Source: Octopus sinensis
Taxonomy: Eukaryota
Assembly: GCF_006345805.1 (NCBI RefSeq)
Contig: NC_043003.1
Location: forward strand, 39,618,001 to 39,682,000
Direction of reading: 5' to 3'
DNA: 64,000 nucleotides
This document shows, one piece after another, positions 36,701-42,700 of the stretch (its first letter is position 1; each line of letters opens with the position of its first letter). The notes beneath the pieces were generated by a model, which had not been told where the DNA came from, ran no database searches, and worked only from the letters and a program-made list of their open reading frames with translations. The position numbers and the translations under genes are program-made.

Positions 36701-39700
36701 AACTAAAAAATTTTAAACTTCTTACACTGGTAGAAGGTGTTTATAAAATATCTTTTTCTCTTGGCTTTATTGAGAAAATTCTATAGTTTGTAAAATATTT
36801 GTTGTTCTTTTTCTGCAATCTCTGCAATTTCAACCAATCAAATATGTCTATTGAGGTAAAAATACATTCTGTGCCGTATGAATATGTCCCTTGTTTAAGA
36901 AACAGATTGGGTTTATTTACATTTCTGAAGAAAAAAAGATACCCTTCTCCCACCCCTAACCCTAACCCTAACTAACATTAACCCTAAAACAGATTGAAGT
37001 GCAATAGATCGATACTAGGGTCATAATTATGGGTGACAATTTCATATGACACCGCTAGAAAAAACTGCCATTCAAACCGAAAAGATCTGAAAGTTGATTA
37101 TAACAACAACAATAAAAATGAAAGATATAAATAGGATTCTTCTTACTTTTGAGGTCCAACCACATTCCTCTTAAACATTTCTACAGCTTGATCCACAATT
37201 TCAGTAACCTGGGTCTCGTCAATACGAGGAGCACGCAAAAGTAAATTTCGATTGCGCATATCAGGAAATACCTCGCACTCCACCCTTGACAACCCAGTGC
37301 CAGATGCGACAATTTCAGAGAAACATTTAATGATAAGGCTAAGTATATCTCGGAATGGAGGGTCGAAAACGATTTTTGGTTCTTCAACTTTCAATTTAAT
37401 TATCATGATTGGAGCAAGAACATACTGTATTTCATTATAATACTCGCCAAAATCATTACCTTGCTGAAAAAAAATCATTTGGAAAATGCAACAATTATTC
37501 ATTTGTTATTCATTTTAACATTTTCGGCAAAAGAATAAAAACTAAATATCTAAAATATGACTAATTTTAAAATTTTTCTGTTGAATCTCATGGAATGAGA
37601 CAACTGGACGCGATTATTTGAACACTGGAGATTTTGACTGGCAGACTGGATTCTGAAGCTTTTTTTTTTTTTGGTGACAGTACTTTTTGATACTGAAGGC
37701 AAATACACACACACACATATGTGAAGAAATATATACATACAGATAGAGATAGAGAGAGCAGAGGGAGAGCAAGAAACGTAGTGATGCCAGGTTTCAGACG
37801 CCATTTTGGGATGTTCATCTGCGCATGTGCAAAGATTAGAGTCTTCCGGTAGGCCTGCCGGAAGTCTCTTATGTGCATGTGCAGTCATCAGCAGCAGCAA
37901 GGCTTGACCACTATTCTCTCTCTTCAGCCCCGGCTTCTGACCAGACAGGATGCGACTGAGACCAGCTCCTTGGAGCTGGCATTCTGATGGTGAGCAATGT
38001 TGTGATTCTGTGAAAATGCCTCCGTATTTTGTGTCTAACTACTAACCCTGCTGCTTCCACCCCAGCGTCCAGGCTACCGATGTCCAGAAATTAAATGCTT
38101 ATTTCGGCAAAATAAATTATTATTGTCATTTGTTTGGAGATTCGTGTTCTTGCTATTTTCCTTTCTACAACTATGTAAGGAATTGTGTGAGGCACCCAAT
38201 CAGTGTGAATATCACATAAAATCCTACAAATATTATAATTTATTAATTGAATACAATTCAATTGACATAAACACTTTCCTTGTCCTCATAAAGAGAAATA
38301 TACATACACACATAAGCACAGAGAGAGGGAGGAGAGCAAAAGAAACATTAAAATGAGAGAAAACATCCAATGTGAAATAAGTCAACACTAAATCAGTGAC
38401 ACCAAATAAGCAGGGCTAGAATGACTGTACCAAAATGTCTCATACCTAAATCTCATACTCCATTAGATTACACAGGAAGTCAACAGACATAGTCAAGTGG
38501 ATAAAGTATTTGACTATCTGCTCATAGATTCCATGTTCGAAATTGCTGTAGGTATTATTTTGTATTTCTGGGCAGATTACTTTGTTTTATGCTATCTCAG
38601 ATCACCACTTAATTAGAAGGAGTAGTTACCAAGTCATCTGAGAAAATTAACTGGGATAGAACAGCAAAATTTTTGATACCTGATAAGGTACCTGAATCAC
38701 CTACAATCATAGTTCTTGCATAAATTAGAAGTAGTGTTTTTCGTGAGAAAATAGTATAAAGGGTATCCCCACCCTACACACACACACACACTAGCTGAAC
38801 CAAGAAGAGAAATTAATTTGGTTCAACTTACCATACAGCATGAGCACAAGCACTAACATAGCTAGAATTTTCCTATCCCTGTTAAGTAATCATTTTACAT
38901 CTATCTATAAATATGACAAGCACTTCAACAGAACTTGTGAGAGACCAGTGCCCAAAGAATCAGAAAAAAAGTGAGCAAAATACTTTGTGGTAATTTTATC
39001 CCCACTTAAACATGGATGCATGGGTGTTCTGTTAGAACAAGCTATACTGCAGTAGATACCATGAGAGAAACTGTCACATTGGCTTTAAGTGCAAAATGCA
39101 CTCTTGTTAATATCGGTAGTGGGGGAGATAAATCCCCAACATCACCAGATCAAGATCAATATCTTGTGGTATTTAGTTACATCCCATTAAGTTCAAGGCA
39201 AAGCTGAGTTTAAACTTTCAACTTTTTGAGATCAGTACCAGTTAAGTACAGAAGAGTTTATTAAACTACAACAACAACAGCTGCCACCACCACTCTTTGT
39301 TCACTGATTAAGCAATTAAAAAATATATCAATTATACTGAATTTAGGCAGCAACAGAGAAAATACAAATGAATACTTACATAATGGATTTCAAAAAATGA
39401 AAGAAAGTCTTTGAGGGAATTAATGATAATGCTTCTGAGCTGGAGGGACATTAAAGATTCAACACTGGAGAAAAATTTCTGCACCATTTCTAATGAGTCG
39501 ACATTATTCTGGGGTACAAGATGGTACCAGAGATCTTTTTGGTTTAGAAATACTTGCGCACAGGTTGGTAACCATCTGGAACATGGAACATAAACAAGGA
39601 GAGATGAAAACAGAAACATATATAAAGAAAGGATCCTCTAAGTGAGCAATTCTTGATGCTTCTGAGGTTGCAAGGTGGCTATTGTGATGTGATGTTCATG

Positions 39701-42700
39701 TAAGCCTGTCTTAGATTGTGATGGGAGACCTGAAAAATAATGCTCTTTAGGCAACTTTTGCTCACCTTCACATTGTTTCTGTTGAAGTGCTTGTCATATT
39801 TATAGATAGACGTAAAATGATTACTTAACAGAGACAGGAAAATTTTAGCTATGTTAGTGCTTGTGCTCATGCTGTATGGTAAGTTGAACCAAATTAATTT
39901 CTCTTCTTGGTTCATCTAGTGTGTGTGTGTGTGTGTGTGTGTGTGTGTAAGGTGGGGACACTCTATATACTATTTTCTCACCAAAAACACTACTTCTAAT
40001 TTATGCAAGAACTATGATTGTAGGTGATACAATTGAAAATAAATATCCTTCTCACAAAATAGATTAAAAATTCTTCTACTTACGCTATCTATGAGGGTTC
40101 TTAATAATAGCTGGAGAGATTTTTGTGTATGTTCATGGCTTGATTGTTTCTTTAAGTGTATGTTTGCCTGTAATTAGATCTAGTGCAAAGCCTAAAATGT
40201 TAATTCTACATTGGTGTTAATGATGATATTTATATTGTGTTCCTTAAATATACCTATCAGATTTTAATTAAATTTATCCATGTAATATTTTTTGGTATTA
40301 TAGAAAATCTATAAACTGTTGTATCTATTACAGTCCAGAGCTAAAGAGAATGGTTCATCTGTTGTGAATGGTTAAGACAAAAAACTTGACAGGCTCAGAG
40401 ATTTTCAATCATTTTTGTAACTGTAGGTGTCCTTTTAAAATAAGCGCAGCTTCTTAACATTGATTACAATCCTACTCATGATGTCCCTAATAGTGATGAG
40501 TGCTTTCCTGTGTCCATGGCTCTCATGAGAGAATTAAATATAGATGGATAAAAATTTATTATATTGAACTGGCTAAGTCCACAGAGTACTTTGTTTCCTA
40601 CGCTATCAAATCTATTGACAATAACCGTAATGAAGTTACATTGAACTGATCTCTTGGAGTTTCTAATTTAAAAGTAGATCTTATCAAGTTTATACTTACC
40701 AACTAGATACAATTTATTTTCGGAGGGTTTTATTAATCTACACGAGTTGGATAGAAGTTATACTTATGATCCTTAAGAGTAATATCAGGTGTGAAGCATT
40801 CCAGATGATCTTCCATTTTAAGTTGAAAGTGTAAGCTTTTACTGCTTTGTGATGCAGTTAATGAGGTTAGTTTTTTTTTTGTTTTTTCTTTTGTATGTTT
40901 TGCTAATGTTGTCTAACAGAAGTTTACAGTGTGCAATACTATTTCTTATTTTCTATCTTTTGCTTCATCTTAGCAACACTTGCCAAATTATGAGAATCAT
41001 GAGTACAACTCATGATGATGATGATGATGATGAGTATAAGTTTAACTTATACAAACAAACATTTTTTAAAACTTTTTTAGTTATTTTTCATCTTTTATCT
41101 TTTACTTGTTTCAGTCATTAGATTGTGGCCATGCTGGAGTACATCCTTGAAGAATCTTTATTCAAATGAATTGATCACAGTACATATTTTCTTTTCAAGC
41201 CTGGTACTTATTCCATCACTCTCTTTCACCAAACCACTAAGGTATGAGGATATAAACACATGAACACCTAATGTCAAGCAGTGGTGGGGGACAAACACAA
41301 ACACAAAGATCTACCAAACGCCAACCCCCACCATATATATATATATATATATATATATATATACATATATATAGAGAGAGGTGGGTGTGTGGTAAGTAGC
41401 TTGCTTCCCAACCACATGGTTCCAGGTTCAGTCCCACTGCGTGGCACCTTGGGCAAGTGTCTTCTACTATAGCCTCGGGCCAACCAAAGCCTTGTGAGTG
41501 GATTTGGTAGACAGAAACTGAAAGAAGCTCATTGTATATATGTATATGTGTGTGTGTGTGTGTTCGTCTCCCCAACATCGCTTGACAACCGATGCTGGTG
41601 TGTTTATGTCCCCATAACTTAACAGTTCGGCAAAAGTGACCGATAGAATAAGTAGCAGGCTTACAAAGAATAAGTCCTGGAGTCAATTCGCTTGACTAAA
41701 GGCGGTGCTCCAGCATGGCCACAGTCAAATGACTGAAACAAGTAAAAGAGTAAGAGTAAAAGTGTATATATATACATATATATATATATATAATAAGATA
41801 ACTACGGAGATGTACTTGCATAGCAAGTGATTTGATCTGAGATCGTGTGCTGAAACGAAAACAATTGCAGCGTGGAAGGTGTTTGTAAGCCATTTAAGAA
41901 ACACACAAAAGCCGTTAGATACAGCACGGATTTTTGTCAGTGAACAGGTCGCGGTCTTAAAGCAACGAAAATATTTTGACAAATTAAACTTAAATGTTGA
42001 AGTGAATCGAACGGCTTTTGTGTGTTTCTTAAATGGCTTACAAACACCTTCCACGCTGCAATTGTTAATAAGATAACATTATTAATAAAAATAATAATAA
42101 TAAAGTAGCCAGCAAGCTTAACCAATATAGGTAAACATAATAAAGATTTAAGATATAAAAAATATATACCAGCTATGAATGTTTTGTCTTCTTTCTAGCA
42201 TAGCTGGTATATATTTTTAATACCCTAAATTTATATATGTATGTATACATACATACATATATGTGTGTGTGTGTGCGTGTATGTGTGTGTATACAACAGG
42301 CTTCTTTCAGTTTCCATCTACCAAATCCACTCACAAAGCTTCAGTCAGCTATAACAGAAGACACTTGCCCAAGGTGCCATGCAGTGAAATTGAACTTGGA
42401 ACCATGTGGTTGGGAAGCAAGCTTCTTACCACACAGCCCAGTTGGAACTCTGTTACAAAAAAAAATCAGTTCAATTTTTTACCCTTTGATTCATTATTTT
42501 TGTCTTAATTTACTACAGGGACTGAACTCAGGTGTAGCATATCATCTCTGGATACAACAACCTTTATTCATGATCACAATAGAACGTATCATTATTCTGC
42601 AAAAAAGGCAAACTTACACGGTTTGAAGTTCAGTTCGGCATTTTAAGCACTGATTTTTAATGACACTCTGAAAGTCTTCTGGTAATAAAGGAAGTTTCAT

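Follow-up and report, generated by a model that had tools for sequence, protein, structure and literature searches.

An inverted repeat pair around a single axonemal dynein exon in Octopus sinensis: a probable by-product of repeat turnover

Introduction

Does an inverted repeat that encloses a single exon act as a device for controlling the processing of that exon, or is it a by-product of repeat turnover in the surrounding introns? Inverted Alu pairs and reverse complementary matches flank circularised exons in human and Drosophila, as known from minigene work. In the C. elegans gene zip-2, reverse complementary matches (RCMs) occupy the introns on either side of a circularised exon, and in vivo such matches promote the back-splicing as well as the skipping of exons in this animal (PMC8330042). 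A similar arrangement is found in a 64-kb stretch of the Octopus sinensis genome (NC_043003.1, positions 39,618,001 to 39,682,000; hereafter the window, in whose coordinates all positions are given). A first-pass annotation of this DNA had described two inverted arms around one exon, derived both of them from a decayed Penelope-like element (PLE) by a later local inverted duplication or conversion and not by two insertions, and regarded their layout as a strong geometry for the formation of a circRNA, for exon skipping or for ADAR editing. Here we consider whether the pair is real, how it may have arisen, and what it would be expected to do in the transcript.

Results

The enclosed exon and its gene

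By homology, the host gene is an inner-arm-type axonemal dynein heavy chain encoded on the minus strand (Table 1). Exon 9, in the numbering of the first-pass annotation, matches residues 371–437 of axonemal dynein heavy chains that are 4,069–4,116 amino acids in length. It reads as one nucleotide followed by 65 codons (WLPTCAQ...FFEIHY) and keeps the reading frame of exons 8 and 10, with AG and GT at its borders. These borders are identical in two distant orthologous loci (L001 and L002), and homology together with the reading frame indicates that exon 9 is genuine. A reading-frame check of the transcript that would result from joining exon 8 directly to exon 10 gives a frameshift, with a stop after 20 codons.

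Table 1. Positions in the window of the arms, the exons and introns around them, and two other exon-bracketing pairs of the same gene
Feature	Position	Strand	Length	Basis or remark
Exon 8 (upstream)	42618-42743	-	126 nt	Ends in codon phase 2; homology, splice site
Intron 8	42617-39576	-	3,042 nt	Set by exons 8 and 9
Right arm	39777-40031	-	255 nt	In intron 8; repeat search, gapped blastn, global alignment
Exon 9 (enclosed)	39380-39575	-	196 nt	Homology, frame, AG acceptor, GTAAGT donor
Loop between arms	38934-39776	-	843 nt	Exon 9 and adjacent ends of introns 8 and 9; no other exon
Left arm	38693-38933	-	241 nt	In intron 9; repeat search, gapped blastn, global alignment
Intron 9	39379-37464	-	1,916 nt	Set by exons 9 and 10
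Exon 10 (downstream)	37146-37463	-		5' end (37463) from acceptor and homologue alignment; 3' limit approximate
LINE-like inverted copies	12078-13448 / 15510-16398			Bracket exon 15004-15171
Dispersed-repeat inverted copies	44161-44345 / 46671-46861			Bracket exon 46367-46446

The arms and their boundaries

The two arms are reverse complements of one another with ∼95% identity. Their global alignment contains 230 matches, 11 substitutions (7 of them transitions) and a single 14-nt gap inside a (CA)n tract, which amounts to a divergence p of 4.6%. Gapped blastn recovers the pair as one alignment with an E value of 3e-93; the inverted pair is real and beyond chance. The repeat search splits it into 38776–38933/39777–39934 (158 nt, 97%) and 38693–38791/39933–40031 (99 nt, 94%). 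This one repeat is reported as two segments because the length of the microsatellite differs between the arms, with (AC)8 at 38776–38791 in the left arm and ∼15 GT units at ∼39919–39948 in the right arm. The arm coordinates given by the first-pass annotation, 38696–38933 and 39777–40028, are right to within 3 nt, and its description of ∼240 bp at ∼95% identity, with ∼10 substitutions and a (CA)n tract in both arms, agrees with the alignment. Repeat search and exon mapping likewise confirm its 843-nt loop holding only one exon, of 196 nt.

On the pre-mRNA, the right arm is the upstream one, separated from the acceptor of exon 9 by 201 nt, and the left arm lies downstream, 446 nt beyond the donor. 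Both end points are common to the two arms, with zero homology outside them: flanks of 60, 120 and 250 nt align no better than dinucleotide shuffles, and the boundaries are sharp. No third copy of the arm, diverged copies included, was found in 62.7 kb of the 64-kb window, and an nhmmer profile of the arm returned only (CA)n noise from the window.

The nearest orthologues that we compared are the loci L001 and L002, where exon identity is about 72–77% and the introns are unalignable. Exons 8–10 are present in L002, and neither an arm nor a straddling inverted repeat was found there or in L001. On this comparison, which covers very distant relatives only, the arm pair appears to be lineage-specific.

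Element identity

PLEs can be found as partial copies in inverted or tandem arrangement. The arms have no demonstrable likeness to these elements, and they cannot be one PLE insertion because a conserved host exon stands between them. Stop-free segments of the arms and flanks contain no RT, GIY-YIG or other transposable element domain (Pfam, E ≤ 1), the matches being noise only. The terminal repeats of PLEs carry a hammerhead ribozyme motif (PMC4209133); Rfam searches detected none at E ≤ 1 in 37500–41500 and none in the window at the gathering threshold. With neither an RT/GIY-YIG remnant nor a hammerhead ribozyme, the derivation of both arms from a decayed PLE is not supported.

ARAGORN found 0 tRNA genes that might represent a SINE head, and Rfam gave no match in the arms; a poly-A or simple-repeat tail is absent in either orientation of the arms. 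Direct reading of the arm ends, TGAATCACCTAC... and ...CTTCAACAGAA, shows that they are not complementary, and the arms thus lack the terminal inverted repeats of a MITE or DNA transposon. By eye, the right arm is flanked by a weak, imperfect possible target-site duplication of 6–7 bp (ACATTG(T)/ACAATTG); the same inspection gave nothing convincing at the left arm and nothing decisive by way of junction microhomology at the arms. An exact 24-mer from the arm had 0 matches in metagenome and genome contigs, as did a control 20-mer taken from a repeat with 10 copies in the window. An arm ORF had no match among called ORFs, which was also the result for a control ORF through a multi-copy window repeat, and the exon 9 ORF of the window itself is absent from that set. 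Elsewhere in intron 8, miRNA-like Rfam matches at 41310–41396 fall on an (AT)n palindrome with scores far below gathering, and were rejected.

The background of exon-bracketing pairs

Straddling inverted matches of at least 80 nt are found at 6 of the 16 mapped internal exons of the dynein gene, and 3 exons have straddling pairs of at least 185 nt at no less than 89% identity. Dispersed repeats saturate the window, and they often stand there as close inverted pairs. The two other bracketing pairs of Table 1 resemble that of exon 9 in having one exon in the loop and arms of 185–319 nt at 89–97% identity. They differ from it in that their loops measure 2.3–3.7 kb rather than 0.84 kb, and in that their arms are multi-copy in the window whereas the exon 9 arms are not: the families behind all remaining close inverted pairs have 3–24 matches each in the window, and the exon 9 pair has none.

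The LINE-like inverted pair consists of two copies with different 5' truncation points. These copies are independent insertions because their ends differ, and for the same reason the composite pair at 12–16 kb was rejected as a segmental inverted duplication. Between independently truncated copies in the window, LINE tails are 95–97% identical.

The predicted RNA duplex

Cofolding of the arms on the pre-mRNA strand gives −392.3 kcal/mol with 234 intermolecular bp, which makes this the most stable pair in the window (other inverted pairs give −157 to −316). A fold of 38680–40045 has an MFE of −575.9 kcal/mol, with the arms paired along their full length. The duplex on this strand includes 6 true mismatches and 5 G·U pairs; five of the seven transitions are G·U-compatible on the transcribed strand versus two on the antisense strand, a difference that is not significant. 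Two of the mismatches on the transcribed strand are A·C, and A·C mismatches are typical preferred contexts for ADAR. The complementary arms occupy both introns flanking exon 9, with only that exon between them, and pairing across the introns is favoured in silico over pairing within either intron, the arms having no other partner in the window. As modelled, this layout is a known cis-geometry for back-splicing, exon skipping and ADAR hyper-editing of the arms. A structure of the kind that serves as an ADAR substrate, an intramolecular, nearly perfect duplex of >100 bp, is predicted in the transcript; because exon 9 lies in the loop and outside the duplex, the arms predict intronic rather than exonic editing.

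The arrangement shares with the intronic RCM systems of human, mouse, Drosophila and C. elegans its complementary sequences in the two flanking introns, its canonical splice sites and the proximity of the arms to the exon. In both cases, pairing is predicted to join the downstream donor and the upstream acceptor, and the same structure promotes skipping. For exon 9, back-splicing and skipping are predictions from DNA sequence and folding, and the octopus arms cannot be assigned to any abundant family of repeats. The systems also differ in length: 13–40 nt of complementarity suffices in tested cases, and the duplex here has 234 bp at 95% identity. A duplex so much longer than the tested RCMs should therefore suit ADAR better, an enzyme that works against circularisation.

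Studies of octopus (PMC9699675) and of Metazoa (PMC5625713) describe inverted repeats in introns and 3'UTRs as forming long dsRNA that undergoes promiscuous ADAR hyper-editing. The exon 9 pair resembles such edited repeats in its nearly perfect duplex of >200 bp within a transcribed intron, but its host is a ciliary/flagellar dynein rather than a neural gene, and editing here is a prediction. For O. vulgaris, the octopus study places editing mostly in introns and 3'UTRs; its supplement gives only 296 circRNAs across 18 tissues, a scarcity that the authors put down to ADAR (PMC9699675). The strong geometry claimed by the first-pass annotation survives in part, since the arms do flank one exon and are predicted to pair along their full length, but its strength was overstated, given the bracketing of 6 of 16 exons in this gene and a total of 296 circRNAs in 18 tissues of O. 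vulgaris.

Discussion

The interpretation that we hold with moderate confidence is that of a real, lineage-specific inverted pair around a constitutive exon 9, which arose as a neutral by-product of repeat turnover and perhaps by local copying. Most probably the pair is neutral or slightly deleterious, a by-product in a gene very rich in repeats, and not a selected regulatory device, because bracketing pairs are common in the gene, the distant orthologues lack the arms, and skipping breaks the reading frame. On the minus-strand pre-mRNA, the arms would pair end to end in a 234-bp duplex closing the 843-nt exon loop. Judging from what is known of ADAR and circRNA biology, the main consequence would be promiscuous A-to-I hyper-editing of both intronic arms; back-splicing of exon 9 into a 196-nt circle would occur at a low level at most, as would exon 8–10 skipping, whose product would probably be degraded by NMD. 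We favour editing over circRNA formation because the O. vulgaris study finds editing mostly in introns and 3'UTRs and circRNAs scarce (PMC9699675).

With respect to origin, we lean slightly towards a local inverted copy over two insertions of a low-copy short repeat. A 240-bp intronic segment with (CA)n already in place would have been copied in inverted orientation, e.g. by templated insertion or a template switch during repair or replication, at a time corresponding to ∼4.7% divergence. Local duplication is favoured because both ends coincide and no third copy exists in 64 kb, and because the arms have no tRNA-like head, tail, terminal inverted repeat, hammerhead or transposable element protein remnant. 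The absence of residual homology in the flanks speaks against conversion within longer and older copies; hints of flank homology in the global alignment failed against dinucleotide shuffles.

The principal alternative, which we consider a real possibility although the less probable one, is that a non-autonomous element of ∼240–255 bp, with (CA)n or a proto-microsatellite in its consensus, inserted twice independently and in opposite orientations. The consequences for the RNA would be the same. Coincident ends are equally expected of this scenario, since full-length copies of a short element have both ends in common, and a microsatellite can belong to a family consensus. The setting is also suitable: dispersed repeats and inverted pairs of them abound in the window, the near-identity of the LINE tails (95–97%) points to young families there, and the right arm has its possible imperfect 6–7-bp target-site duplication. 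However, the exon 9 pair differs from every other pair in the window in that a search of 62.7 kb yields no further copy, diverged or otherwise, and its arms offer no SINE head, tail, terminal inverted repeats or convincing left-arm target-site duplication. A rough calculation leaves two insertions in difficulty at either copy number, because two copies of a low-copy family are improbable at a distance of 1.1 kb, and a high-copy family should have left more copies in the window.

We regard it as unlikely that the duplex is a selected cis-regulatory structure, either producing a functional exon 9 circRNA or looping out exon 9 in an ADAR-sensitive manner (unproductive splicing) and thereby tuning dynein output. 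Among the exon-bracketing pairs of the window, this one is the tightest and the most stable, its arms have no competing partners, its transitions tend (not significantly) to be G·U-compatible on the transcribed strand (5/7 versus 2 on the antisense strand), and in C. elegans RCMs can drive back-splicing as well as skipping in vivo (PMC8330042). Against these points, the pair is absent at the distant orthologous loci, exons elsewhere in the gene are likewise flanked by pairs of ordinary repeats, skipping would shift the reading frame, and a divergence of 4.6% with six true mismatches reveals no obvious constraint; circRNAs are also rare in octopus according to the supplement cited above (PMC9699675). 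More doubtful still is a fuller version, in which a genome-unique local inverted duplication would have been kept as an ADAR- or temperature-sensitive exon 9 switch, yielding a 196-nt circRNA or an NMD-targeted exon 8–10 isoform and so adjusting the amount of motor in sperm or ciliated cells. Long-read data are known to yield artefactual inverted duplications, but a spurious one generated here by chimeric long reads or haplotype mis-joining is the least probable explanation of all, as the arms differ by 11 substitutions and in (CA)n length and have between them 843 nt of unique sequence with a conserved exon in the correct frame and order, whereas artefactual palindromes are normally near-identical and abutting, and the window contains zero Ns.

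Exon-bracketing inverted repeats need to be weighed against how often such pairs occur locally, in this gene at 6 of 16 exons. The exon 9 pair is one among several comparable repeat pairs in a single gene, an ordinary occurrence in a repeat-rich genome. If the arms do drive circularisation or skipping of exon 9, then the locus would be a compact natural test case, with an 843-nt loop, one exon and no competing partners, in which the trade-off between the very active ADAR editing of cephalopods and back-splicing could be followed. Should the pair prove to have been copied locally and to occur nowhere else in the genome, it would show long intronic hairpins arising by templated inverted duplication, a mechanism by which new hairpin-RNA loci have been proposed to originate.

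Inverted repeat around exon 9

An inverted repeat encloses exon 9 of a minus-strand axonemal dynein heavy chain gene (exon ordinals follow the first-pass annotation), as confirmed by repeat search, blastn and global alignment. Within 37500-41500 the repeat search returns two adjoining inverted blocks, one of 158 nt at 97% identity (38776-38933/39777-39934) and one of 99 nt at 94% (38693-38791/39933-40031), which merge into a single gapped blastn alignment (E 3e-93). Aligned globally, the arms match at 230 positions and differ by 11 substitutions, of which 7 are transitions and 4 transversions; the one gap, of 14 nt, is solely a difference in (CA)n length. 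The divergence p is 4.56% (4.7% with Jukes-Cantor correction), and the loop measures 843 nt. The arm coordinates, identity, substitution count and common microsatellite first proposed are thus correct. An assembly artefact is unlikely, because 11 positions and the microsatellite length distinguish the two arms and because the unique sequence between them holds a conserved exon whose order and frame are correct.

Arm homology stops abruptly at the ends. On each side, flanking segments of 60, 120 and 250 nt score no higher than dinucleotide-preserving shuffles, and the homology that seems to continue past the arms in the global alignment is chance. A third copy was not found in the 64-kb window by blastn (word size 7) or with an nhmmer profile built on both arms, the additional matches of which cover (CA)n columns only.

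Exon 9 and the next coding block align end to end with residues 374-544 of a 4,069-residue chain in PDB 9fqr (E 9e-46), and also align with human DNAH3 (8j07); Pfam DHC_N2 lies in an ORF further downstream. The best structural homologue of the dynein N-terminal region, chain 9fqr_Xx, is deposited as 'putative malate dehydrogenase 1B', a name that looks wrong because its length and alignment are those of an axonemal dynein heavy chain. Exons 8, 9 and 10 join as one open frame (...CRTELQTV/WLPTCAQ...FFEIHY/QGNDFG...). The right arm is 201 nt upstream of the exon 9 acceptor, in intron 8 (3,042 nt), and the left arm 446 nt downstream of the donor, in intron 9 (1,916 nt).

Features of the window (window coordinates)
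Feature	Position	Strand	Description
Left arm	38693-38933		241 nt, intron 9
Right arm	39777-40031		255 nt, intron 8
Exon 9	39575-39380	minus	196 nt; AG acceptor (ttccag/ATGG), GTAAGT donor; 1 nt + 65 codons
Three upstream dynein exons	~46446-46367, 44095-43976, 42743-42618	minus	homology to residues 263-291, 291-330, 328-368 of the same dynein chains (9fqr/8j07)
Consensus-like 5' splice site	38826-38832	minus	UAUG/GUAAGU, ~550 nt into intron 9
LINE-like copies	12078-13448, 15510-16398	opposite	91-97% identical; bracket a single dynein exon, ~15004-15171; loop 2.4-3.7 kb
Inverted pair	44161-44345/46671-46861		89.5% over ~190 nt; brackets the 80-nt dynein exon 46367-46446 alone
Inverted pair	42902-43067/43733-43898		90%, 665 nt apart, entirely within intron 7
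Third copy of the intron 7 pair	24927-25080		87-88% identical
~180-nt repeat, examples	41383-41570, 846-1010, 3337-3515, 49963-50144, 51274-51457		~18 copies, both strands, 75-91% identity
Two adjoining ORFs	30249-31285	plus	dynein intron; Pfam DDE_3, E 1e-6, just at the curated cut-off
(AT)n-centred palindrome	41310-41396		read as low-complexity, not as a miRNA

Predicted RNA structure

When the transcribed strand of 38680-40045 is folded, the arms are paired along their full length in both the minimum free energy structure (-575.9 kcal/mol) and the centroid, with exon 9 in the loop. Cofolded alone, the two arms give -392.3 kcal/mol and form 234 base pairs with each other, against -157 to -316 kcal/mol for the window's remaining inverted pairs. 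Of the 11 differences, 5 read as G.U pairs on the pre-mRNA strand and 6 as true mismatches (2 of them A.C); the antisense strand would instead have 2 G.U pairs and 9 mismatches, an asymmetry that is not significant. The 5' splice site in the downstream arm would be buried inside this duplex.

Origin of the arms

Both end points coincide between the two arms, unlike those of the neighboring 1-kb LINE-like inverted pair (12078-13116/15510-16398), whose copies are truncated at different 5' points. The other close inverted pairs all come from families with 3-24 matches in the window, the arm pair having none besides itself. Coincident ends and uniqueness in the window lean towards a local inverted duplication. 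The same two features also fit two complete copies of a short, low-copy element. On the arms, neither a tRNA-like head nor tail, the hallmarks of a SINE, nor terminal inverted repeats were found, and target-site duplications are unconvincing (ACATTG(T)/ACAATTG at the right arm only). Conversion between older, longer copies appears disfavored because the flanks retain no residual homology. A decayed Penelope-like element (PLE), named as the source in the first-pass annotation, is unsupported: no transposable-element domain was found in stop-free segments of the arms and flanks (Pfam, E<=1), nor was the hammerhead ribozyme that is the noncoding hallmark of PLEs (PMC4209133), either in 37500-41500 at E<=1 or in the whole window at threshold. 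That interpretation is thus partly supported, in its exon-bracketing geometry and not in its PLE origin.

Exact-word searches of metagenome and genome collections and an ORF search of a protein collection returned 0 arm matches. These collections evidently lack a close genome, since positive controls from a multi-copy window repeat also returned 0, the exon 9 ORF of the window is itself absent and its nearest homologue is only 75% identical.

Frequency and conservation of the geometry

The window contains 37 inverted pairs of at least 80 nt lying no more than 10 kb apart. Using ~18 exons located by tblastn with full-length dynein representatives, a map that may be incomplete, we asked for each of the 16 internal exons whether an inverted match of at least 80 nt links the introns on its two sides. 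Six of the 16 are so bracketed, and the geometry is commonplace in the dynein gene. For three (15004-15171, exon 9 and 46367-46446) the pairs reach a length of at least 185 nt and an identity of at least 89%, and among these the exon 9 pair is the most similar and the tightest (loop 0.84 kb versus 2.3-3.7 kb).

Each LINE-like copy carries an ORF for the C-terminal part of a reverse transcriptase, tandem repeats of ~60 nt in its interior and a 3' tail that occurs ~24 times in the window; the copies are collinear but differ in 5' truncation point, and are therefore independent insertions. The family of the 44161-44345/46671-46861 pair is dispersed (14-17 window matches). The intron 7 pair has a third copy, so that a family of low density likewise forms a tight inverted pair here. 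The ~180-nt repeat supplies many more intronic inverted pairs, which span multi-exon blocks; it may resemble the abundant tRNA-derived SINE of octopus, although ARAGORN detected no tRNA-like gene in the window. The DDE_3 ORFs look like a Tc1/mariner-type transposase remnant. Rfam miRNA-precursor matches to the (AT)n palindrome are sub-threshold (best 46 bits versus a gathering score of 81), and we read them as a low-complexity artefact.

Exon 9 is present with identical boundaries at two distant orthologous loci, L001 (Logan ERR3431203) and L002 (ENA ERZ21867824), and the exon 8/9/10 boundaries are kept exactly (L002 1096-10345, L001 566-771). Exons there are 72-77% identical to those of the window in nucleotides, introns are unalignable and very different in size (7.7 kb for intron 9 of L002 versus 1.9 kb here). 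None of the window's repeats is common to either locus. Because neither the arms nor a straddling inverted repeat of their own was found at these loci, the sequences give no indication that the geometry is deeply conserved.

Implications for splicing and editing

We file the arm pair under two known classes, exon-flanking reverse complementary matches and long intronic dsRNA. ADARs hyper-edit long duplexes that are nearly perfect. The arm duplex would form co-transcriptionally and hyper-editing would be expected within the arms; because exon 9 is in the loop, over 200 nt away from the duplex, the arms give no reason to expect editing inside the exon. Reverse complementary matches in the introns on either side of an exon promote its back-splicing as well as its skipping, as established by in vivo deletion in C. 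elegans (PMC8330042). ADARs antagonize circularization, according to work cited in PMC9699675. Editing in O. vulgaris falls mostly in introns and 3'UTRs (PMC9699675), and that paper gives few circRNAs, 296 at high confidence over 18 tissues, most of them seen in one tissue. Straddling inverted repeats are so frequent that the presence of one only weakly predicts a detectable circle in this lineage. Skipping of exon 9 shifts the frame, and a stop follows after 20 codons; any skipped product would therefore be unproductive. Functional claims for the arm pair are a priori weak in octopus, and on the best reading back-splicing or skipping would be minor at most and the pair a neutral or slightly deleterious by-product.
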